A stretch of DNA of 64,000 nt from Vicugna vicugna (GCA_013265495.1 MU063738.1:496001-560000); one strand, 5' to 3'. Positions 2,011 through 32,722 are shown, counted from the first letter of the stretch. Program-made: numbers and translations. Notes: generated by a model from the letters alone, not told the origin.

Positions 2011-5000
2011 CCCCGACTCAGCCCCTTCCCAGCTTTGGGCCAAGCGTGCAGCCTGCCCTCCCGGCGGGCACAGCAGTGACCAGTGCCGACTCAGGGCAGC
2101 CCGTCCAGGGGCGCGCTGTTCAGACAGTTGTAGAGATAGATGTACTGCTGCTGGGGGCAGACACCGCGAGGACACCGCGAGGACACAGTGAGGGCACAGC
2201 AGGACAGTCTCCCTGTGCCTTCACCTGAGAGCAGTGGTCGCCAATGCCACCTGGTGGCTGCTCCTATGGCGCTGCCCAGAGGCCCCCTGCAGCTGGAGCA
2301 GGACCTTCCCTACCCTTCAACCCTTCCCAAGGCTGAGCCCCTGATCGCCTCTCATCAGAATTGGGATCATGAGGCCACAGGCCTCTGACTGCTGCAAGGC
2401 CACGGTGAAGACGTCCACGGTGCACTCAGCCCCTGCCTGCTGCAGCAGCTGGTCCATGGCCAGGAAGGTGCCCAGCTGGGCCGCACCCTTGCTGCAATTG
2501 GTTTTGAGTTGGAGGGGGGACCTTAGGGGCAAGGAGGAGGGCCAGGTACCCAGGGAGATGGGAGAACCCAGCCTGGGCCTGGGGACCAGGGAGAGACGCT
2601 AGGCACGGCCAACCAACCCCAGGCCCCAGTAGGATGGGGGCAGATTCCTGAATGATGTCAGGCTGAGTGAGGGGGGGGGGCTGTGTCCTTCTAAGCTGGG
2701 CTCAGTGGGATGTGAGGCCCTCGGGGAGGCAGTGAGGGGTTCTGCCCACTCCCCCAGTCCCCGTCCAGCAGCACCTGGAGTGGCTGAGCAGCGTGCCTGG
2801 CTTCTCCGCTTCCCGGGAGAAGCACTGGCCCACGGCGGCCAGGAAGGGCAGCAGCGTGGCAGCTGGGAGTTCCTGCCCTGGCTCCCCACGGGGAAGCTGC
2901 AGCCGCTGCACCGGCCTCTCCTTCCTGCTCCCACGCTGGGGGCACAGACCTTGGTGCTGGTGCCAGAAACCGGCTCAGGCCTGCCCTGCGGCCCCACCAC
3001 CCCAAGCCCCGCGGCCTGACGCTCACGTGTGTGACGCTGAGGAGGGTGCAGGGCCAGCCTGCCACATTGCTCTCGGCCACCCAGTTCACGGTCACTGCAC
3101 GCCCCGCGGTCACCCCTACCCACGATGGGGTGCCTCTCCGTGGGCCAGAACTCCTGTGGCTGGGACCAGACACGGCTGCTCAGCCAGGTAACCCCTCCCC
3201 GCCCAATCACACCCCACCTCAACTCCTGAGACATCCCACCCTCTGTCCCCTGTCCCCCTCACCTTCTCCTGGACGTCCGGCGGGCACAGGGAGACCAGCA
3301 CGCGGGCCCCGTGCTCCCACACCAGCTCCCACAGCTCCTCAGGCCCTCTCGGGCCAGTCAGCACCATGTGGTCGTGGCCAGAAGGCCCGCCCTGCAGAGC
3401 GCAGCTGGTCGGCCCCCCGGACTGAGGTTGTCCTCTGCCCATCTCAGCCCCAGGACCCCCAGATGACCCACCCAGGGAGCACAAACAGCCAGAGGGCACT
3501 GTCTTACGGGGAAGAGCCAGGCTTCGGGCATCTCGCCAGGGGGGCCCTCCTCCGCCGGGGGAACAGAATGGTCGTCTGAGGGACGAGGTGGGGCGTGAGG
3601 CTGCCACTGGTTTCCACCGGCCCAGGTCCCACCCACCTGCACGTCCCCTGAGTGCTCCTGCTCACAGCCAGGAGGGGTCGTAGCAGAGCCGACCTGGTCC
3701 TTGAGGGCCTGGAGCAGGAGCTGGGAGGGCAGAGCTGGTGAGGCTGGCAGGCCGCAGGGGTGCTGGCGGGAGGGCATGCCCCGCGATCACCCCCACTGGC
3801 CGGCAGCGCACCTTGTACTCCCCAGTGAAGCCAGCGTTGGTGTCAGCCGCCCTGAGAGTGCACGCCTGCACGAAGTTCCCCACGGGGATGGGCTGGGGCC
3901 TGGGGGCCTCGCGGGCAGCACGGGTGCCACCTGAGGCTCCCCAGCTTCCTGTCTTCGCGGCCCTGCTGTGGACAGGAGTCGGCGGCCTGTTGGTGAGAGG
4001 GGTGGGCCCCAGGCCTCTGGCCCCGCCCAACAAGGGCTCCTGGCGCGGCTCGTACCCAGAGGAGCTGGAGGGCCCTTCCAGGACCTTGCTCAGGAGGCAG
4101 CTGTGCAGGAAGACGTACTGGCTCTGGAGGAGGTGGGGAGAGGCCGTCCGCTGAGGGGCTGTGGCCCTGGGGGAAGATTTTCAGGCCCTAACCTGCCACA
4201 CCCAGCGGGGCAGGGGAGGGGGCATCTGGGCAGAGACTTCCCACCTCCCCTTTGGCAGAAGGGGAGACAGAAGCCCTGGTGGTCAGGTGACTGAGCCCCT
4301 CCCCAGGGCCCTTTCCTGGCCCCTCCGAGCCTGTGGCCCAGCCGTCTACCCCCATCTCCTCCCAGGGTCCGGCTGCCCGGCCTGGCCAGCTGTGCCCTCA
4401 CCGGGGTCTGGATCATGAGGGGCTGGTGCAGCCGCAGTGTGTATGCTGCGTGGAACACGTCCACCGTCTGCTCCTCCTCCAGCTGCCGCAAGAGCCTCAA
4501 CAGGGCCACGAAGGTGCCGGAGCGGCCCACGCCTGCGCTGTGGGACTGAGGCCCAGGGCGGTGAAGGGGAGCCCTCCCCGGCCCCCGCACCCCGCTGCCC
4601 GCCCTCACCTGCAGTACACCAGGAGGGGCCCCGTGCCCTGGGCGGCCCTGGCCTGCTCCTGGACCAGAGCCACGAAGGCCAGCAGGGAGCTGGGGGTCTC
4701 GGGGACGCCGTGGTCGGGCCAGGTGGTAAACTGCAGCTGCTTCACCCTCCGTGCTGGTTGCTGGGCAGCCTGGGGATGGGGCAGCAGGGGGCTTCGCTGT
4801 TTCTCCTCCCCTCCGAACCCAGGACCCCTGCAGCCCTCGCTCCCTTCATCAGAGCGAGGGCAGGCCGGGCCTCCCCACATCCAGAGCTGCCTTTGGGATG
4901 ATCAGACAGAGGGCATACCACCCCCGGAGGTCACAGCCTGGGAAGGCGGATGGGGTGCAGGCGTCTGGGGTGAGGCGGGGGCCCCGAGCTTAGCGCGGGG

Positions 5001-8000
5001 CAGGGCAGAAACCTCCCCTGCTCAGCCCGCTCTGCCTTGGACTCGCTGTGACTTCAGGTGAACCCTCAGCCTGCCCTGTGCCTCCGGGCCCCTTCCCCAG
5101 CCACCAACCTCCCCGGGAGGAAGGAAGCCAGGGGACCCAGGAGGTGAGGCCACCTCCCCCAAGGGTCTCCACTCAAATGCCCTGCCTCGCCCCGGGGCAT
5201 GCACGTGCTGCAGCTGAAACTCCTACTTGGTCCACTCCTCTTCCAGCTCCTCTGCCAGGAGGTGGACGATGATGTGCCCATGGGTGACGGAGGTGGGGTT
5301 GGCTGGTCAGTAGTGCTCACATAGCACCTACGGCCAGCAGGGGGGCGGGGGGTGAGTGTGAGCCCAGCTTCCTCCCTGCCATCCCTGCTTCATCAGCGCA
5401 GCCCTCTGCCTCCGTCACCCTGCTGAGACGCTGCTCTCTGTGCCACCTGTCCCAGAAGCCTCTCCCTGGACGGGCTCCAGCACCCTCACCCCAGGCCTCT
5501 CATGTGACCCTTAGCGCTTCCAGGCAGCTGCCAGGCTGCTGTGCAAAGCTCACGGCCTTCCTGCAGGCCAGGCCTGGCTCACTGCCCAACCCGGGGGCTC
5601 AACAGGCCTGCCCCAGGGCCCCTCATGGAGCAGGCCTGGGCGTGTTTAAGGCAATGGTGTCCTCTCTCTGCCTCCCACCCTGGGGCCCTCCTCACCCCCA
5701 TCGCCTCCAAATGCCTTTGCCTCCTGGGCTGGGGCGGGACAAGGCGGACACGAGGAGAGACAGCAGAGGCCGTGGACGCTGAGTCTGCCCAAGTCCCTGG
5801 TCCCTCTACCTGCCCCATCCTGGAAGGCCTGGGGACACCCATCCATCTCCAACCTGACCCACCCTCCTGCCCCGGGCCAGTCCTGCAGGGAGAATCCGCC
5901 ACCTGGCGTCCACTCCAGGAACTGCGGTGTGCTCACCTGCCCATTCTCCATGCCCACGGTCAGCATGATGATGATGTGGACCTGCTGCTCCCACACCAGC
6001 CTCCAGAAGTCCTCCAGGGTCTTCTTGAGGGGCCCCTGGGTGACAATGAATTCCTGCCGGTGGGTGTAGCCCTGTGAGGGGGGAGGAACACGTTAACTGG
6101 GGTCCCCAGCACCCAGCTGTAAGTGTCCCACGTGTGAGCTTAGGGAGAGAGGACTCCGTGTACAGGCGCACATGTGTGCACACACATGAACACGCGTGCA
6201 CTGACAACTTAAGCCAGGAGGGTGTCAGAGACAGCCCCACCGTGAAGGGACAATGACAAGGGACGGACGGGCCTGGAGCAGCCTCCCCAGGCCACCCTCT
6301 ACACCACCCCTTCCCACAGCAACCACATGTCTCCTCCAGGTACACCCGAGTCCCCAATCCAGCACTCAGCTCCCCCTCCAGCCAGTCCCAGTCCCCTCTC
6401 CTGCCTCGTCCCCACCCCTCCCAACCCCTGGCTCTTCTCCGGCTTCCTTCCAGCTGCACCATCCACCCCTTTTTCCTCACTTCCAGGATTCAGGAAACCA
6501 ATGCCCCCTCTACCAGGAAGTCTTCCTTGATTCCTGGGTCGACTAAACGTCTTCTTCTTCAATGTGCTCTGAGCACTACACGTGTCCCTTATTACAGCGC
6601 TTGCCACCCCACGTGATGGATGTGACACATGCATACACACACGTCCTCTGAAGCTGGGAACATGAGTGGTCTGGCTCTGCCTCTGGTGGGCCCAGCACAG
6701 TGCCCGCACAAGGCAGACCCTGAATACATGCCCGTCGTGTTGACCCAAAGAAGCACAAGCTGGTGACCCTGGTTGATAGGAGCTGCCCCTACAGCAGGAC
6801 AGTGTGTCCCGTGAGGACCCTGAGGGCGGCCCTACCGGGATGAAGCTGGCATTGACATAGTCAGAGTGGGGCTCTCCGTCCAGAGGGGCCAGCCTGACCC
6901 GGGAGTGGTCATCTGAGGACGGGAGAAGCGGTGTGCTCAGCCGGGCGCCTGCAGCCCCTCCCCGGGCCAAGCTCCAGCCCCGCCGCCCATGCCACCTGTA
7001 CTCACAGGGCAGCACGTGTGGGTAGCGGTTCTTGGCAGCGTTGGCTGGGTGCTCGGCCTCCAGCCTGGGCAGCTCCTTGCCCACCTCCTTCAGCTCCTGA
7101 AAGGTGGGGCCGAGGCAGACCCTTGTGGCCCCCATGCCAGCGAGGGGCAGTGCATCATGGAGTCCAGGGCCGCGGAGGCCTTACCTCGAACTCCTGGAAG
7201 CAAGCCTGGTGGGCATGGGCACTCTTGGCCTCATAGCTCTGCCGGAAGCTGTGGGCAGGGATGGGCCGGTGGGTCCGCCTGGGGAGAGGGAGGGAGTGGG
7301 CAGTGGCCTGGTGGGTACAGTCCTGCCCTGGGCTCTGGTGGGAGGTGGGCACAGTACCAGGGACCCCAGACCTGGCTGCACAGCCTGGCTACCTGGGCCC
7401 CAGCCCTGAAGTGAAGCCACGTAAAGGAGGTTGTCTGCACACAGCAGGGCCGCCAGCCACCCCGGCAGAAAGGTGGACAAGGGAACAGAGGGGGCAGGAC
7501 AGACAGGACCCCTACGCCCGGGGCCTGCGCACACGTGCTCACAGCGGGAGCTCCGTGTGAGGTCACCAGAAAAAGCAGGGATGACCAGAGGGTAGATGAC
7601 AGATCCGATGTTGGAGAGAAAGAAGGAAAAGGCAGCGATTTGACCTGAAACCACCCAAGTGGTTAGCCGGGACAAGGTAAGGACGGAAGGCCGGGGGTCT
7701 GGAGTAGAGGCTGGAGGGCCCAGAAGAGCTGGCTGAGGAGGGTGTGCTGGCAGCTGACGCAGGACTTGGCTGGGGGGGGGTGAGGGGTGCGGTCCCTCAG
7801 GATACAGCGCCAGGCCAGGCGGGGCCGTGCTGCTCAGCTCCTGGTCCAGGGCGGGAGCCCACTCACCACAGGTTGTAAGCAGTCCGCTTCGGGGAACTCA
7901 GCTTCTTCTCCGCCCTGCAGAGGATGAGGGGCCATGGGAGACAGCCCGGGCAGCCTCCTACAGCCCCGCTGCCCCAGCCCCACCCACTCACCTCTGCGCC

Positions 8001-8405
8001 TTCGCCCGCCTCCAGTACAGCAGGCCCAGCACCCCACAGAGGGAGAGGACGCAGCCGGCCACGATGCCCACCACTGCAGGAAGGGGCATGGCTGCCTGGG
8101 ACACACTGGCCCGGGGCTCTGCGGGAGGCAAGGGGCGGGTGAACTGGGCGACCTCAACCCTTGCCCTGCGGCAACATGCCAACCTCCCCTGGACCTGGGA
8201 CCCTCAGGGTGGAGGGCGCAGCGACAACTCCCCATCCTGCGCAAGTCCCAGGTGCCAAACCGAGGCCAGAGACGGCTGCAGGGGGCCCGTCCTGGATGGG
8301 AACTGGGAGTGGCCAGCAGCACCCCTGCCCCAGCCCCTCCTGGACTTCCTCGAGGCAAAGAAGAGGGCAGGCCTGGCCCCCTGCCTCGTGGCGGGGCTTC
8401 TGGAG

Positions 8406-8711
8406 CTGTGCTGTCCAGGACAGTGGCCGCACGCCCCTTGTGACTACACAGCAGCTCCAAGGTAAGACTTGCTGTGAGTGTCAAATGCACACAGGGCGCC
8501 AACGACTTACTGACAACAAAAGAGCGTAAAATACCTCATTAATCATTAAAAATGGGTTACATGTTGGTGTGTTATTTTTGATATCTTGGTTTAAATGAAG
8601 TGTTACTAAGATTAACTTCAACTGTTTATTTTTTAACGTAGCTACTGGGAATGTTACTTACATGTGTGGTCCCCACTTGCGGCTGGCCACCGTGTCCACC
8701 AGACAGCACTG
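8406..8711 (-). mobile_element. MER33/MER3-like hAT-Charlie MITE
   Basis: Terminal inverted ends ctgtgctgtcca...cagacagcactg and an AT-rich body matching the recalled MER33 consensus (gtaaaatacctcattaat, gctactgggaatgttacttacatgtgtgg). Confidence 0.7.
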
Positions 8712-11637
8712 TTCCAGAACCTCGGTGGCCAGGGGCAGCAGGCAGAGGGGGGCATTGCTGGAGGGAGCCAGATCCTGGCAGCAGCAAGCCGTCTCCTCGG
8801 TGCCTCCACCCATCCCAGCCCCTCAGCCCACCCCGGCCAGGGCTGCCACCAGGAGCACCCCCACCTGGCTCTGAGGCCCCAGCCCTGCTCTCCCGCCAGT
8901 GGCTGGGGATGAACCAACCCCCTCAGCACCAACCCCCACCCCCAGGACCCAGCCGGACACCAGCCAGGTGCCACCTACCTGAGAAGGCGGAGAAGGAGAC
9001 GAGGGTCTCGGGAGGGCTGTACTGGGTGAACGCCACGACACTGAACCTGGGGCAGAGGCGCAGGCCCTCCCGCTGGGGCAGAGGCGCAGGCAGCAGGCCC
9101 AGCCCTCCCAGGAGACAGGCATGAGCACCAGGCACACAGACAGTGTATCGCCCACACCTATTCGGGGCCCTGAGACTGCACAGCCAGCACCCCCCGCGCC
9201 TCTTCCTGCCCTATTCTGAGAGCAAGAGGCCCTAGAAACAGCCACCTGAGTATCCTTGGCATCAAGACAGAATCCATCCCCTTGCTTTGCAGAGGAAAGA
9301 ACCGTGGAAACAGGTGGGTGTACTCCTTTTTGCCTTGCCTACCAGGAAGCCCGATCAGAATGACTCTGCGGATGCTTCTGGAGCAGCACATGCTCTCTCT
9401 TTGCAACTCAGCCCAGCTCTTTGGTTGACAGAGGGCATAAACAACCCATAAATGCAACTGTAAAGTTCTCCTCCCATCAGCCTTGGGGTCCCCATCAGTA
9501 TCCCAGCCTCACCGATCCTGGGAACCTGGCTCGAGCTGCCCGTTACAGATGTCCTGGGTCCGGCTGCAGTCCTCCATCCCCACAGGCACCCTCCAGGAGG
9601 TCGGCACAGCCCAGGGCCCGGGGTGGAAGGGGTTGGCGAGCAGGATGGCCAAGTAGGAGTCGTGTCCTCCATAGTAGTGGTCGTACCACGTGTGGTTGAC
9701 AGCCTCCCGGGGCGGCTGAGTCACTGGGACAGGGGCCGGGACAGGGAAGGCAGAGGGGGCAGTGGGGCCATGGCCTCGCTCCCCAGCAGAGGGGCTTCCC
9801 TGTGTTTCCACGGTGCTCCCGCCGTTCATAACACAGCAGCCCCATCGTCCAGAATGTTTGGAGCTGCTTCCTGCGCCACGACTCACACCGGCCTCAGACA
9901 TTTCATCCTGCCCAGGTCAGCGCCTGGACCCCTCACCCACCCCTGCTGGGCAGCAGCCAGGGTCATCCTCCCCCTCTTGTGCCCAGGACTCACGCGACAT
10001 GCTGGTGGTGGTGATGATGCCACACCACTGGATCTGCCCGTCATCCTTGCCGAACATGCCCCGTGTGATCATCACGCCCGTCCCCAAACCGGGCTCCAGC
10101 TGGGGCGCTGGGGCCAGCTCTGGGGGGGCGCCAGGCTGGGAGGACAGGACAAGTGAGGCCCGACAGTAGCCTCCAAGGGCAGGGCCGCGCCTGCCACAGT
10201 GGCTGGCAGATGCCCTGAACCAGAACTGGGACCCCTGGGCCAGGCTCCCAGGCGTGAGCCCACAGTGGGCAATCTGCGGAAGGCCAGGGGAAGGGGCTGG
10301 AGCTCAGCGGTGCGGATGAGGATGGAGGAAGACCAAGGGAGCGGGGCTCTGAGGCCGAGGAGGGAGCCTACCCTGGGCAGACGTGGCGCACACCAGGGTA
10401 ACAGCCCGGCTGCACAGGCCATTGCTGCCCCGCACAGAGAGGCTGAGGCGGTAGGGAGTGGAGGGCTCCAGGCCAGACAGCAGCAGGGCATCCCCAGAGG
10501 TGCCGGTCTGGAAGACTGGTTGGGCACTGCCGCCGGCTGCCAGCTGCTCTGCCACCACCAGGCAGGTGTCCACGGCCCCCGGGGGCACTGTCCAGGTCAG
10601 GGTCAGACGGGTGGCCTCGGGCCGGCACTGCACGTCCTCCACGGGGTCTGGCTCTGCAGGTTTGAGGGTTCTGTGTCATGTGGGAGTCAGCGTAGCCCCT
10701 GAGGGGCTCAAAATCAGCAGGCATGGGGGACCAGGCATTTCTGGCACCTTGGATGTGGGCAGCGGCCATGTGGGGAAACAAGGTCTCCTCTGGACATGCC
10801 GCCCATCGAGAGGGAGGGGGCATTCCCAGGGCGGTGTGGGCGCAGTGCCCACCTGGACGAGCGGGGTTGGGATAGAATGGACGGCACTCGGGGCACTTTG
10901 TCCCCCCGCGACAGGCACCAACATACCCACAGGCAGCACCACATGGTGGGTGGAGGCCTGGAGTGGCCCTGCCTGGCACAGCACCGACAGGAAGAGGTTG
11001 CGTCCAGGTGTGAGGTCCCTCAGGGCCAGGTGGGCTTGGCCCAGCACCAGGGGCTGCTCCCGGGAGAGGAGCCCAGCCTCGCAGAGCTGGGCGCGGCACA
11101 CACCATGCCCCAGGGGGCCGCTGGCCCAGGCCAGGCTGACCACGGCACTGCCCACCTGCATCGACACCAGCAGCTCAACGGGCACCAGTGGGGCTGTGGG
11201 GAGGAGAGCGGTGGCCGCTGACCTCACGCAGGACTCAGGGTGCAGGTGGGGAGAGGGACTGGGGGCGCTGCGGGGCCGCTGAAGGAAGGAGCAGAGGTCC
11301 CAGAGGAGGGCCTGCCCACCACCCCCGCCACGGCCTTCCCCACTCCCACTCACACGTGCAGCCCGAGGTGTTGGCCGCCGCCCCGCAGAGAGGCCCAGCT
11401 TGCGCGACGACCGCCACCTCATACTCAGTGCCTGGAGTGAGAGCTGAGAAGCTGGCGCTGTCCACCTGCGCCCCCACAGTGCTGGAGCCCACCCGGGTGC
11501 CTGCCTGGAACAGGGTCACCTGGTAGCCATCCCGGCCCCCGGGAGCGTGGACCCAGGATGTCCGGAGCTGGGTGGGGCCTTCACTGGTCACATTTACCAC
11601 AGGAGGGGCGAGGGGGGCTGTGGGGAGAGGAGCGAGA

Positions 11638-11955
11638 TTTCAGGGGCTCAACTGTGTCCCCCCAAAATTCATGTTGACGTTCTGACCCCCAGAATGCGAC
11701 TATATTTGGAGGTAAGGCCTTTAAAGGGGCTACTGAGGTGAAACGAGGCCGTCGGGTGGGCCCTGACCCAGGGAGATTAGGACCGACACACCCAGAGGGA
11801 CTCGGGGCAGGCGGCCGTCCGCACGCCCCAGAGAGGCCTCAGGCAAAGCAGCCCTGTGACCCCTGGGTCTCAGACCGCTGCTCAGGGCAGTGAGGGCTCC
11901 AACGGCCTAAGCCGCCCACGTGGATTCGGTTCAGGCAGCTCCAGTGACCGAGGCA
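11638..11955 (+). mobile_element. MaLR solo LTR, MLT1A/B-like
   Basis: gggctcaactgtgtccccccaaaattcatgttga...gaatgcgactatatttggaggtaaggcctttaaa...gggtgggccctga matches the recalled MLT1B consensus. Confidence 0.8.
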
Positions 11956-13125
11956 GGAGGGAACGCAGGCCAGACCTGGGCCCCACCCCCGCAAAGGGCC
12001 CCTGCTCCCCCACCCTTGACCCAGTCGCCAAGCACCGGCTCGGGTGGCGAGTGAGAGGAGCTGCCTGCTGAGGAGCAGGCACCTGCCAGTTCCTCCTAGG
12101 CCGCGGGGCCCGAGCCCCCGCAGTGCCGACTGAGCGAGCAGTCACCCCGCCGCCGCTCCGGACTGCAGGGAGGTCGGGGGCCGCGCAGCCCTGGGGACCC
12201 ACTCCCCGTGTGGCCAGTAGGAAGGGCCCGGCAGGGGACACTCACGCGTCCAGCCGGAGGCGTTAGCGCCACTGCTCTCATCCAGTCCCTGCAGGGTAGC
12301 CAGCCACACCAGGAAGGCGGTGCCTGGGGGCAGCCGGGCCCAGGAAAAGCTTTGTGCCTCGGGGGCCAGAGTGTCCTGGCCCTCCAGGGCTGGGGGCCTC
12401 AGGCGGTAAAGCCGCAGGAGGAAGCCATCCCTGCCCCCCCCCGGTGGGGGGCTCCAGGAAGCACTCAGGACAGGAGGCTGGGCAGCCAGACCCAGGCTCA
12501 AGTTGGCGGGAGGTGCAGGGACTGCAGGACAAGGGGGAGACAGATTTGGGACAACCCAGTCCCTGCCCCTCCTCCCCCACTGTCTGACCCCGCTCGGTGG
12601 TCTCCAAACACAGCAGCCACGGGACTTGGAGCCCACCCTCGTTTCCTCCCCAGGAAAACCTCTCAAAAGACACAGGGCTCCACCCTGACGCCTGCTCCTT
12701 GCCTCCTTCACAAACCATCAGCAACTTGAAGGCGTGACGTCTGATCCACATGGTCCCCAGCCACACCCAACCTGTGTCTCACACCCCTTAGGACCAGGGT
12801 CCCCAGCTCAGCCGACATTCAGCCCCTGCAAGCTCACTCCCTCCCTCTCTCACTCCCCCACCGAGGGCCTGGGTGCACACCTGCCCCCTCTGCCCAGTAA
12901 GGCCCCTCTGCCCACTCTGCTCAGACCCACCTGCTTCTCAGCTCTCTCTCTCCCTCTGGGAAGACATCCCTGACTTCCTAAAGTGGCCCCTCTCTGAACC
13001 CTAAAAGATTAGCCAGAATCACATAAAATTCCCCGTAGTCCTCGATTTTAACCCACGAGAAGAGAGTTTCACGCGGCTCAAGGAGACTGAACACGTTTAC
13101 GCTATGACAGGAAAAGCAACGCGCA

Positions 13126-13275
13126 GGGGAGAGCAGAGCTCAGTGTGCAGAGCATGTGCTTAGCATGCGCCACGGTCTGGGTTCAGTCCCCAGCACTCCA
13201 TTTACAAAAAGTAAAGTTAAATTAATAAGCTTGATTACATGCCCCCAAACAAAAAAGTCAAAAACTACTAAAAGC
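13126..13275 (+). mobile_element. tRNA-derived SINE of camelid type (Vic-1-like)
   Basis: ggggagagcagagctcagtg...tgcttagcatgc...ctgggttcagtccccagcactcc (A/B-box-like head) followed by an A-rich tail. Confidence 0.7.
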
Positions 13276-14769
13276 TGCACAAAAAAAATCAATACGCGTA
13301 AACCAACTGTTTGCTGGTCAGCCTTCCCCCGAGACCGCCTGGTTCACAATCTTTAGCTTCAGCACCTAAACCCACACCCAGGAAATGGGGCGCCGGTTAC
13401 ATACTTACTGCAGGGATGGCCGTGTGGCTGGCCGCCCAGAGGGCAGGGGAGGGGGAGTGCTTGCAGACAGACTCGGGAAGGGCCCCCGTGGACAGATGCA
13501 CGACCAGACGGAGCACGTGGAGGGCACCGCCCCCGACCCTGCCACCGCCCAGGGTGGGCCTCCCGGAGCTGAAGCCGCAAACTCACGGGTGCAGGCGCCG
13601 GCCCTCTGGACGCTGGAGCTGAGGTTCCCCACCCAGGTCCACACAGACACGGTGTAGCAGGAGCCGGGCACTAGGCCCGTCAGCGTCAGGCTGGAGTGAT
13701 CTGAGCCCACATCGACAAGACCACCTGGTGACCTCTGGCTGCCTTCCAAGTGCCAGCTGACCCTGTAGCCTTCCCGCTGCCCCGGTGCTGGGACCCAGCC
13801 AATGGCCAGCTCAGAGGGGCTGCCCCTGCCAGTGACTTTCAGAGACTGGGGTTCCAGGGATCCTGGAGAGAGAAGCAGTTTGGTAAGGGGGGCATATGAT
13901 GTCTGGGGCCCTGTGAAGCCCCTCCCTTTCCTCCTCAGCCCTCCCCCACCTAGGTCTCTACCTCCAAGGCGCAGCCTCCCAGCCCCAAGGCGGGCGACAC
14001 AGTGCTGGCACCCACCTGTGTGGCCTGGGAGGCTCTGGGTGGTGTTCCCCAGAGAAGAGACCACGTCCGCCTGGTAGTGGCCCCCAGGCCCATGGAGGGT
14101 GCCCGGGGTGGCACCGGGTGGCACGGAGATGTTTCTGAGAAGGCCTGGGGCTCCCTCGGTGTAGAGCATGGTCTGGCTCCCAGGCCCCCCGCTGGTCTCC
14201 TGCCCGTCCCGGGGCAGCTCAGGGCCGTCACCTTGTCCAGGCTGGGCTGCAGAGTTGGGAGAGGACATGGTCCCTGGAGAGGGAGGATTCACCTGCCTCT
14301 TGGTGCAGGGCCCCGCCCTCCTCCACCCTAGCCCAGACTCACCCTCCAGCCAGGCACTGGCCTGGGCCCAGGCGTCATGGGGCCCGGCCAGAACCCTCAG
14401 CTCCAGAGTGTAGCGTCCGGCTGGCAGGGGTCCTGAGAACGTGGCATTAAGGGCCCTGGGGCCCAGAGTGATGGTCTTCTCCACTGGCCCACTCAGCCTG
14501 AGCAGGTAGCCATCCTGGGCCCCGGGCCCCGCCTCCCAGCTGGCACAGAGCCCTGGGGGCAGGGGCATGAGCAGCAGGTCCAGGGGGGCTGAGGGATCTG
14601 TGGGGAAGGGAGCAGGATGTGACCTGGGCACTGGTGAGAACAGTCACACCCATATGCAGCTCCCCTCTGTGCTCAGGGCCAGGTCACACCCAGGTGGACA
14701 CGGTAACAAATGATAACACATCGAGTGACCGAGTGTGCTGGTGCAAGATCCCACACTCCTCCCAACACC

Positions 14770-14875
14770 GCCATTCTTGCCCCCTTTAAAGGTGCAGAGA
14801 CCGAAGCTCAGAGAGGGTGAGCAATCTGTCCAGAGACCTACAGCCAGTGAGTGGCAGCAGTGGACTCAGAGCCCA
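14770..14875 (-). mobile_element. MIR fragment
   Basis: gaagctcagagagggtgagcaatctgtccagagacctacagccagtgagtggcag resembles the MIR core. Confidence 0.55.
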
Positions 14876-14989
14876 GGCGGCCTGGCTCTCCACTCTTTAC
14901 CAGCGCCAGACAGCGCTGCTCTGCACAGAAATGCAGCAGAGTCCCTGTGTGCTCAGCCCAGCCTGGACGCTTGTAAGTCTCAGGACCTG

Positions 14990-15100
14990 GTCCCTCTCTC
15001 TGAACCTTGGTCCCCTCAACGTAGCAGGGGGATAACAAGACTTACATGGGGCTGTTTTGGAGGGTAAATGAGATGATGCACGGGGCTGGCACACGGAGGG
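14990..15100 (+). mobile_element. MIR fragment
   Basis: ctctctgaaccttggtcccctca...ggggataacaagacttacatggggctgttttggagggtaaatgagatgatg. Confidence 0.55.
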
Positions 15101-18100
15101 TTCCAGTGACAGTAACTGTCACCACGGACATCTCCTGCAGGAGCGCGCTCCCTCCGGGCCACACCCTTCCCTGCAGGGTCCTGGGCCCTCACCCCCCAGC
15201 TGTACCCTGCCATGTCCCCCTTTTGCTTCAAGCACTCACAGGTCCACTCAGTGGCGTTGGGTCCCACTGTCTGAAGGGGCCCGGCAACAGCTGTGAGCAT
15301 CAGCTTATAGGGGGTTCCCGGAGAGAGGTGAGCAAAGGTGTGACTGGAGACACCCCGTCTGATCCCTGCCATCAGGTTGGGGCCACCAAGGAGGTCTGTG
15401 AGGGCGAGATGCAGCCAGGCGGCGCCCCGAGAGCTGTTCCAGGAGGCCTGCAGGGCACTGGTGCCCAGGGCACGCAGCGCCAGCTGACCTGGAGCCTCGG
15501 GGGCTGGAGGGAGAGCCGTGGGCTTGGAGGAAGGGCCAGAACAGTGTCCCAGCAGCCAGAGCCCAGAGGCCCGGCTGCGCTGGCACACAGCCCTGCACTG
15601 CCCCCTCCCAGACTGGCTGCCACCTGGGGCCTCGCCGAGTGCTGGCCTAACCTGTCCACTGGTGGGTGCTGGTCTTTGCCTGGAGGTTGGCGGCCCAGGT
15701 GGTAACCTCCAAAAGGTACTCGCTGCTTGGTAAGAGGTCGCTGAAATTGTAGGACAGGGTCCCCGGGGCCACGGAGATGTTATGAGCCACTGCCTGGGAT
15801 TCCAGGTGGTAGAGGAGAAGCTGGTAGCCATCCTGCCCACCGGGGGCAGTGCCCCACGAGGCCTCCAGGCTGAACGGGCTCCCAGAGCTGTGGAGCCGCA
15901 GGGCCTGGACAGCGGACGGGGCTGCCCCGGAAGCAGAGGCACCACGTTCGGGGCCAGGGCATCGCCCCTGCTGCTAGTGCTCTGGACAGGCCACTGTGCC
16001 AGGCATGGTCCTCGGGCACTTCGCCCTCCTTGGCACCCTGTCCCCCGACCCTCCAGGGTGTCCACATCAGTGCCCGCAGCCCCTCCCCTGCCTGCTGGCC
16101 AGGCACCTGTGTGGGCAGTGAGGACGACGGTGGTGTTCTGCCCGCAAGGGTGCAGGGCCGTCACTTCCAGCTGGTACTGACTTCCTGGCACCAGGTCCTG
16201 GAACTCAAAGCTGGACGCACTGGTGTGGGTCTGGAGCTGCTGCCCTTCGGGGAAGCCCAGGGGGCTCAGCTGGGTTAGACGGAGTATGTGACTGGGACTG
16301 CCAGGCCCTGGGGCTGCCCAGCTCAGAGCGAGGCTGGCGGACGTCCCCTGGCCACTCACGTTCACGGTTGGAGGTGGTCCTGGGGAGAAGGGTGTGTTCA
16401 GATGCTCCCCGCACACCCCTTCTGCCCTAAAGAAGGCGGGAAGGCAGGAAAGGCCAGAGCAGAGACAGGGTCTGGGTGGAGAAATGGCCCCGCCCTACTC
16501 CCCGCACCCCCAGCAGGGCTCCTACCTCTGCTCTTCCCGCCTGGACCCCCTTCCAGGGAGGGACACTCGTCTTCTTGTGGGGAGGAGGTGGTGGGAGGCT
16601 ATGGGCAGACGCTATGGGTCCAGCCAAGATCAGAGACGGCTGTCCTCTCATCTGGCACCCCAGACCCGGCCACGGGGCATCACGCAGGATACCCAAGATG
16701 CGGAGGCCGGCAGCTAGGGGCAGACCACTCTGTCCTCGTCTGGGCTGGGAGGGAGCACCGCTGCCTGAAGCAGACCAGCTGTGGGTCCACGGAGCAGCAG
16801 GGGGCCTGGAGGCCTGGGGAGCAGGGGGTCCACTCACCTCCCCCACCTCCAGTGCCCACCTAACCTGCGCCAAGAAGCCTCCGAGCCAGAGGAGCACAGC
16901 GAACAGGACCAGGGGCCTCATCTTGATGGACAGATGGACGGACGTCTGCAAGGGAGAGCCGCAGGAGGAGCCAGTCCCTCAACCTGCCCCTTGCCCTGGG
17001 GGCTGGCAGGCAGGCAAGGGCGGCTGCGCTGCATCTCAGCAGGGGGCAGGCAGCCTCTCCACCCGGGGCCCTGACCCCACTGCGCCCAGCTTGGCAGGAC
17101 CTGGTGAAGGGGGCAGATCGCAGCTCCCAGGCTGCAGACCAGCTCACCTCTCACTCTGCACCCCCTCCACCCTCTGCCCGCAGGTGGCTTCCCAGGTAAG
17201 GACATGCCCTGTGCTGGGGGTGGGCACACACACAGAGGCAGCTAGCCCCCCAGCTCTCTGCCCCCGGGAGAGGAGGGCCGTCTGACTCTCAACACATGGA
17301 GATGGATGGGGCGTTTGTGTTCCTCTGGGATCAGATCCTGGTGACATTGCCTGGGGGCGCGCTGCTGGGTGCCTGTGTGGATGGACCAGCTGTACATGTG
17401 AGCCCCCTTCTGGGTACTCCTGAGGCCCCACGTGCTGATGGACACTGGAGCACGCCCTAGAGGCCTTGAGTCTCCGTGACTGTAGATCTAGAAAGGCATG
17501 TGGCTCCACACCCTCACACCCCAGGGGAGGGATAGCCCAGCTGGCCGCAGTGTGAGGAGGGGCTGGACTGGAGCCTGGGACTCCCAGCTCCTCCCAGCAG
17601 AGACCGCATCCCACTCCCAGCCCCCAAGGACGCGTGCTCGCCACCCCCACCTCCCCCACCCAGATTAGCGGTGCCCACGGGCCCTGGCCCTCCTGCCCCC
17701 ACCTGCTCAAAGGCCCAGAGCAGCCTTTCTGAGGCCTGGCCTAGAGGTCCCTCTAGCCTGGAGCCAATTACCTCCTGGAAATGCCCCCCCGGCCCCCAGC
17801 TGTCACAGGAGGGGACAGCAGAGGAAAGGAAAGAGCTCTGGGCCCTGGGGACTCAGGAAGTGAGGAGGGGGACACGCAGCAAACACGCAGGTACAGAAAC
17901 CGAGCAGCGAGACGGCTTCTGCGGGAGCTGGTCTCCCTGGGGCCAGTGGGGCTGGGAGCACAGGCCTGCAGGGAACCTGCTTAGCCCCACTCCCACCCGG
18001 GGTCCTCCCGCTCCATCAGGCCCCGAACCTCAGCGCGCCCGCTGGCCTCCGGACGGGGGCCTGGAAACTCGACCCTGCAGCCCCACCAAGTTTTCCAGGC

Positions 18101-32566: not shown

Positions 32567-32722
32567 NNNNNNNNNNNNNNNNNNNNNNNNNNNNNNNNNN
32601 NNNNNNNNNNNNNNNNNNNNNNNNNNNNNNNNNNNNNNNNNNNNNNNNNNNNNNNNNNNNNNNNNNNNNNNNNNNNNNNNNNNNNNNNNNNNNNNNNNNN
32701 NNNNNNNNNNNNNNNNNNNNNN
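32567..32722. other. ARL8A: Assembly gap (156 N) predicted to contain ARL8A coding exon 1
   Basis: Lies in the CpG island; exon 2 begins at SGQF in phase 0 and no MIALFNKLL-type exon is visible elsewhere. Confidence 0.8.

Follow-up and report, generated by a model that had tools for sequence, protein, structure and literature searches.

The 64,000-nucleotide stretch of DNA analysed here (Vicugna vicugna, GCA_013265495.1 MU063738.1:496001-560000), which we call the window, carries on its minus strand, between positions 16921 and 2094, what is very probably a unitary pseudogene of the receptor phosphatase gene PTPRV (OST-PTP/Esp). The pig, oryx and cat PTPRV proteins align colinearly with this interval, from start to stop codon, and divide it into 33 exons, which bears out the complete 33-exon gene that an earlier note had read from the sequence alone. 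Minus-strand open reading frame (ORF) pieces between 2 and 17 kb contain a signal peptide, a fibronectin type III (FN3) series, a transmembrane helix, a WPD loop, 'LLVYC' followed by 'SAGVGRSG', and a second domain resembling a protein tyrosine phosphatase (PTP). The alignments were made with our own protein-to-genome spliced aligner, which permits introns in all phases, frameshifts and stop codons. Given oryx PTPRV and its own locus, the aligner returns 33 exons, all bounded by GT-AG and at 100% identity, and the outcome on the cat, elephant and pig loci is equally clean. All 33 oryx exons are matched in the window at the nucleotide level as well (69-92% identity), the phases and lengths of the window exons agree with those of pig and cat, and the conserved 33-exon structure and intron phases are thus found at this locus. 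Pig and cat serve as the structural reference, with pig, cat and elephant concurring on exon lengths; for exons 6/7, 25/26 and 30 the model of the oryx gene (Oryx dammah, L001) was set aside, since these three species agree against it there. Translated conceptually, the window gene shares 73.8% identity with cat PTPRV, about equal to the 75% identity between pig and cat.

Exon 1 (16921-16865) holds the start codon and a signal peptide (MRPLVLFAVLLWLGGFLAQ) and is intact, with a GT donor; exon 2 lies at 16574-16526. Exons 3-12 (16379-10372) jointly encode the FN3 ectodomain, with Pfam fn3 matches on pieces, and are all open, with no stop codon and no frameshift in the pig, oryx and cat spliced alignments; their coordinates are 16379-16107, 15921-15652, 15503-15240, 14597-14343, 14246 (or 14255)-14016, 13862-13587, 12521-12246, 11617-11354, 11193-10927 and 10653-10372. 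Exons 13-15 (10135-9994, 9723-9513 and 9046-8979) lead to exon 16 (8118-7992), in which the transmembrane helix (VVGIVAGCVLSLCGVLGLLYW) is read from the ORFs, and to exon 17 (7914-7867). The membrane-proximal PTP domain, D1, occupies exons 18-25 (7278-4056), namely 7278-7185, 7096-7006, 6912-6836, 6071-5937, 5327-5205, 4769-4609, 4537-4402 and 4123-4056, with Pfam Y_phosphatase matches on exon pieces and the WPD loop in exon 23. A linker and the second PTP-like domain, D2, are assigned by colinear alignment to exons 26-33 (3962-2094), at 3962-3812, 3720-3633 (or 3641), 3575-3508, 3391-3263, 3153-3027, 2935-2775, 2491-2356 and 2150-2094, the last of which ends in a conserved TGA stop codon at 2096-2094. 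The D2 pieces on their own give no Pfam match; both PTP domains nevertheless align colinearly. In-frame insertions or deletions occur in exons 7, 9, 26 and 28. We also note that exon 9 has a run of nine G (12438-12446) where the dromedary has six and the outgroups fewer, an in-frame gain of three nucleotides in a homopolymer.

The identity of the gene is supported by three further lines of evidence. When the ORF piece at 13408-14643 is compared with 1.84 billion representative proteins, the best match is the 1716-residue pig PTPRV (E 1e-96). Annotated PTPRV proteins among the 117 matches come from pig, ruminants, carnivores, elephants and other afrotherians, rodents, lagomorphs, strepsirrhine primates, marsupials, a monotreme, birds and reptiles, and no camelid, cetacean or horse PTPRV is found among them. 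Other receptor phosphatases rank far lower in the protein search (a protein named 'phosphatase eta' has E 1e-155, whereas PTPRV proteins have E 0). The neighbourhood is also conserved: the window includes PTPN7 (plus strand, about 24-30 kb) and GPR37L1 (43-47 kb), while the ARL8A position is filled in the Camelus loci by a 186-residue Arf-family gene that is unnamed in the record. LGR6, observed in the oryx locus only, falls beyond the window start, and the conserved order places PTPRV between LGR6 and the series PTPN7-ARL8A-GPR37L1. The window is GC-rich throughout (about 0.55-0.68), and a run of 156 N at 32567-32722 interrupts a particularly GC-rich part between PTPN7 and the expected ARL8A.

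A processed pseudogene or retrocopy is ruled out by the retained introns, all 32 of which lie at orthologous positions in the kept ancestral locus. The R3-type receptor phosphatases PTPRB, PTPRJ, PTPRH and PTPRO resemble PTPRV in having an all-FN3 ectodomain and FN3 exons of about 270 nt. Each of the four has a single PTP domain. A paralogue such as PTPRB, PTPRJ or PTPRH is ruled out by the synteny, the two PTP domains and the order of the matches. Because best match, colinear exon structure and synteny all point the same way, the locus is recognisable as the single-copy PTPRV orthologue in its ancestral place beside PTPN7.

To locate disabling changes, each exon with its flanks was aligned at the nucleotide level to the intact oryx, cat and elephant loci, and the pig locus was compared through its intact canonical gene model and three local comparisons of its own. 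At every lesion site the ancestral state is seen in oryx, cat and elephant by alignment and in pig by the gene model. Four lesions fall in the phosphatase half. Exon 22 has two in-frame stop codons, a TGA at 5307-5309 in place of an ancestral TGG (Trp) (lesion 3) and a TAG at 5223-5225 in place of an ancestral CGN (Arg) (lesion 4), and both stop codons are seen in the spliced as well as the nucleotide alignments. Exon 30 is 127 nt long as against 111 nt in pig, cat and elephant, owing to a frameshifting insertion of about 16 nt at roughly 3106-3121 (lesion 5); the insertion looks like a local duplication, and its placement is ambiguous by a few nucleotides. The splice donor of exon 32 (2354-2355) is AT where oryx, cat, elephant and the pig model have GT (lesion 6).

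The catalytic motif in exon 23 is also altered in the nucleotide alignment, a CAC codon having become TAC at 4614-4616 and VHCSAGVGR having become VYCSAGVGR. Among 104 annotated PTPRV proteins, 95 have VHC, one has IHC and eight give no match to the motif, so that wherever the motif is found, in 96 orthologues, it has His and never Tyr. The window sequence, VYCSAGVGRSG, thus departs from the signature of active classical PTPs, (I/V)HCxAGxGR(S/T)G. A further site, the end of exon 27 (3631-3641), is ambiguous: it has one extra nucleotide, the orthologous donor is GC (3640-3639), and the frame is kept only if a GT eight nucleotides downstream (3632-3631) is used instead. This site may be counted either as a seventh and eighth lesion or as an in-frame shift of the donor.

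Two lesions lie in the 5' half. The splice acceptor of exon 2 (16575-16576) has changed from AG to AA (lesion 1), while AG is found in oryx, cat, elephant, dromedary, bactrian and the pig model; use of the nearest downstream AGs (+1, +4) and skipping of the 49-nt exon would each shift the frame by -1. Exon 13 has an extra C at 10122-10128 (lesion 2), giving a run of seven and a length of 142 nt rather than 141, where dromedary, oryx, cat and elephant have six C or fewer and the pig exon is 141 nt long. The first stop codon after this frameshift comes at residue 953 under orthologous splicing, ahead of the transmembrane exon. As a change in a homopolymer it is the least secure of the lesions (k-mer share 0.98-0.99). 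The exon 7 acceptor (14247-14257) has moved as well, the orthologous AG being lost and an in-frame AG lying nine nucleotides downstream at 14248-14247. This is probably an old and benign change on the camelid stem, because it is common to dromedary and bactrian.

In total there are two stop codons, two frameshifts, two splice-site losses and one catalytic change, and 62 of the 64 splice dinucleotides are intact by the aligner. The six ORF- or splice-destroying lesions and the catalytic change listed in the earlier note are all reproduced by alignment to intact orthologues, and its splice-site count matches the aligner output, with the exon 7 acceptor and the exon 27 donor as two further orthologous sites that have moved. 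Lesion density is higher in the 3' third, with 4-6 of the 6-8 lesions lying within 35% of the coding length. Taken at face value, the two nonsense codons of exon 22 would end the frame ahead of the WPD loop and the catalytic cysteine, and the replacement of VHC by VYC would alter the catalytic motif itself. The 16-nt insertion in exon 30 and the dead donor of exon 32 would break the second domain, and the exon 2 acceptor mutation and the one-base insertion in exon 13 would break the 5' half. All 33 exons and nearly all splice sites are kept, yet a phosphatase product would no longer be possible.

The neighbouring gene GPR37L1 places the window among the camelids. Its exon 1 is identical to that of Vicugna pacos and has six mismatches to Camelus ferus/bactrianus and dromedary, and its exon 2 ORF matches alpaca at 99%, with pig next at 87%. 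Camelus loci, reached via Camelus PTPN7, are about 95-96% identical to the window at the nucleotide level. From these similarities the window is assigned to a South American camelid (Lamini). The PTPN7-anchored loci end at window-equivalent positions 13371 (dromedary L004 and bactrian L005, exons 1-8) and 7281 (dromedary CamDro3, L006, exons 1-17). Exons 18-33 of the Camelus gene should lie just above 37,680,095 on dromedary GCA_036321535.1 CM070330.1, just below 515,409 on bactrian GCA_048773025.1 CM109928.1 and just below 712,316 on CamDro3 CM016649.2. An apparent stop codon at cat residue 567 in L004 and L005 was rejected as an end-of-locus artefact. We also observe that RefSeq labels PTPN7 'LOW QUALITY PROTEIN' in all three Camelus species (P0397, P0447, P0448, P0450) and not in alpaca.

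The two window lesions that can be compared are both absent from Camelus: dromedary and bactrian keep AG at the exon 2 acceptor, and dromedary has six C in exon 13. As these alignments place them, both are specific to Lamini. The dromedary copy is the same gene in the same place and likewise has disabling changes (L006:1-10300 and L004:1-4200, with bactrian L005:1-4200 for comparison), but these are five lesions of its own in exons 1-17. One base is deleted in exon 3 in both dromedary assemblies and not in bactrian, and the exon 3 donor is GC in all three Camelus loci; in L006, one base is deleted in exon 10, exon 12 has CAG changed to TAG, and the exon 16 donor has changed from GT to GA. Across exons 1-17, therefore, five disabling changes in dromedary and two in the window include none (0 of 7) that is shared.

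The strength of selection was estimated as the ratio of nonsynonymous to synonymous change (dN/dS). The cat protein served as the anchor for the codons of every species, and parsimony was used to assign changes to branches; simple pairwise alignment of nucleotides was rejected for this purpose, as it gave too many spurious compensating gaps. For exons 1-17 the ratio is 0.42 on the Lamini branch (bootstrap 0.23-0.78; neutrality P=0.002) and 0.72 on the Camelus branch (bootstrap 0.42-1.34; neutrality P=0.15). The camelid stem (0.46), pig (0.41), oryx (0.42) and cat versus elephant (0.35) provide the background. The Lamini value equals this background, which fits a recent loss and by itself shows no relaxation. 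For D1, pig has a ratio of 0.11 and the cat-elephant comparison one of 0.17, while the stem plus Lamini has 0.29. The oryx branch stands out in D1 (exons 18-25), at 0.54 against these pig and cat-elephant values; constraint on ruminant PTPRV may have weakened, and the oryx model also has the shifted boundaries at exons 6/7, 25/26 and 30.

The number of lesions also bears on the age of the loss. With a locus-specific indel-to-substitution ratio of 0.062 and a Lamini synonymous divergence of 0.03, a fully neutral Lamini branch would be expected to accumulate about 17.4 disabling lesions, against the 6-8 seen. Because of this shortfall and the background-level dN/dS, we infer that inactivation took place inside the Lamini branch, spanning roughly its last fifth to half, once the Old World camels had split off, rather than in the ancestor of all camelids. 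This agrees with the young decay proposed earlier. The earlier note had placed the loss in a probable camelid lineage; the lineage is camelid, by GPR37L1 and by identity to Camelus, and the loss is assigned to Lamini and not demonstrably to all camelids.

An older event, in which PTPRV or its phosphatase part was already dead in the common camelid ancestor and tribe-specific lesions were added later, is the strongest competitor, though an unlikely one. The dromedary too has disabling changes, its genus has a dN/dS of 0.72 that is not distinguishable from 1, and the comparison with Camelus is limited to exons 1-17. The greater density of window lesions in the 3' third points in the same direction, and, given this intracellular pattern, the phosphatase part may have died earlier; the D1 ratio of 0.29 on the stem plus Lamini exceeds that of pig. 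That ratio is, however, far below 1, the camelid-stem value of 0.46 is at background, and the Lamini branch rejects neutrality. The absence of any common lesion among the seven in exons 1-17 argues further against inactivation in a shared ancestor, as does the exon 3 frameshift of dromedary, which bactrian lacks.

The locus may also be transcribed. Read support was measured as the share of sampled 31-mers (words) found per sequencing run, and in each half of the gene 0.19-0.25 of the sampled words turn up in RNA runs that carry the label 'reproductive system'; a fully covered spliced mRNA would be expected to hold about 0.24 in the 3' half (our own count). Because the observed share is near this expectation, the locus is probably transcribed in reproductive tissue, as a non-coding RNA or one prone to nonsense-mediated decay. 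This raises the question of whether the locus is fully dead or still makes a useful non-phosphatase product, for example a regulatory RNA or an FN3 ectodomain that is secreted and stops after exon 13. The open exons 3-12, the Lamini dN/dS that is still 0.42, the words of both gene halves in RNA runs, and a frame that ends with orthologous splicing before the transmembrane exon would all suit such a product. Against it, the mutated exon 2 acceptor puts the reading frame out directly behind the signal peptide, whichever simple splicing alternative is used, a recent loss equally predicts a low dN/dS, and the RNA evidence consists of word shares. We consider a surviving function of this kind improbable, more so than an older camelid loss.

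The reading that we prefer, at a probability of roughly 0.85, is that of a young PTPRV unitary pseudogene in a South American camelid, which arose independently of the human loss and, where this is testable, is not shared with Old World camels. The separate dromedary decay would likewise be an independent event. Independence from the human loss, which the earlier note thought probable, is supported by the presence of intact PTPRV in pig, many ruminants, carnivores, afrotherians, rodents, strepsirrhines and marsupials, together with the ancestral states at the lesion sites in oryx, cat, elephant and pig and the absence of the two comparable lesions even from Camelus. It rests on these intact orthologues in other lineages, the human PTPRVP sequence itself standing outside the comparison.

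Several points weigh against the recent, Lamini-specific loss. NCBI calls products of 1795 and 1729 residues at the dromedary and bactrian loci (1373 in an older annotation), which leaves the status of Camelus PTPRV unsettled, and lesions in exons 18-33 held in common with Camelus would mean an older loss of the phosphatase. The dN/dS values are simple counts on parsimony ancestors and not likelihood estimates, and the genome was covered through one window, so that a second intact copy could lie elsewhere. The lesions are supported in the runs indirectly, via sampled 31-mers. For 9900-16950, 13 of 14 DNA runs have a share of 0.98 and one of 0.99, and some 15 words are missing from every run. 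Because about 2% of the 5'-half words are absent from all runs, the exon 2 and exon 13 lesions are less secure, and these two, above all the homopolymer, could be assembly errors. The missing words could come from a mis-called homopolymer (the seven C of exon 13 or the nine G of exon 9) or from GC-rich drop-out.

The 3' stretch is better covered. For 2091-8090, which holds five of the seven changes, the share is 1.00 of 631 31-mers in nine DNA runs from six studies under three organism labels; of the other DNA runs, two reach 0.99 and three reach 0.95-0.96, one of these under a fourth organism label. Any one lesion falls within 31 words, and about 1 word in 9.5 was sampled. That all the lesions are assembly or sequencing errors in a gene intact in the animals is very improbable, although the exon 13 lesion is one base in a homopolymer, the word share in the 5' half is a uniform 0.98 and run support comes from sampled words. 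Substitutions and a 16-nt insertion, which are atypical of assembly errors, make up five of the seven changes, the 3' stretch with its five changes is complete in those nine runs, and a given lesion would go unsampled only about 3% of the time by our own estimate.

PTPRV has been lost before. The human copy, PTPRVP (1q32.1), appears in one list of unitary pseudogenes (PMC2864566), and two other papers also call it a pseudogene (PMC8799702, PMC3657394). It resembles the window copy in being an unprocessed pseudogene of the same gene in its ancestral place, with recognisable exons and the same neighbourhood. It differs in belonging to a separate lineage and event, and the camelid copy, with its 6-8 lesions, is much younger. 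Mouse Ptprv (Esp, OST-PTP) is expressed in osteoblasts and gonads (PMC8799702, PMC3657394), and the gonadal expression may be set beside the reproductive-system label of the RNA runs that hold PTPRV words. The window gene shares with mouse and rat Ptprv the signal peptide, the FN3 ectodomain (exons 3-12), the transmembrane helix and the two PTP domains, and its exon structure is that of the intact orthologues. Unlike the rodent genes it is disrupted by stop codons, frameshifts and splice lesions and reads VYC instead of VHC, and its predicted product cannot dephosphorylate the insulin receptor in the way proposed for the mouse enzyme.

A comparable case is the black rhinoceros, whose locus (L007:2600-19350, 'hypothetical protein' P0005) has four in-frame stop codons, about 17 one-base deletions and several broken donors. 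The rhinoceros copy is far more decayed than that of the window and its lesions differ, and some of its indels may be assembly errors; it is probably another independent loss. Loss of PTPRV is thus probably recurrent in mammals, and the searched literature, in which the human pseudogene is known, makes no mention of such a loss in camelids or other non-primates. We tentatively propose, at somewhat less than even odds, that PTPRV has been knocked out independently in large placental mammals, namely the human lineage, South American camelids, dromedary and rhinoceroses, and that the proposed Esp-insulin receptor-osteocalcin brake would then be repeatedly dispensable and no general mammalian mechanism. 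As a variant of this proposal, the phosphatase half of the camelid gene may have died first, while selection on the FN3 ectodomain persisted for a while.

The debated osteocalcin model, in which bone controls insulin sensitivity, gives mouse Esp/OST-PTP a central place, and the standard argument against carrying the model over is that humans lack the enzyme (PMC3657394, PMC8799702). With a second loss in camelids, independent and recent, mammals would have dispensed with the enzyme more than once, and the decay in dromedary and rhinoceros agrees with this. The loss of PTPRV is no explanation of camelid glucose physiology, and a link to camelid glucose handling, already called speculation in the earlier note, is pure speculation and unsupported. 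Camelids may instead serve as natural knock-outs for asking what replaces Esp, PTP1B being the candidate that has been suggested for humans.

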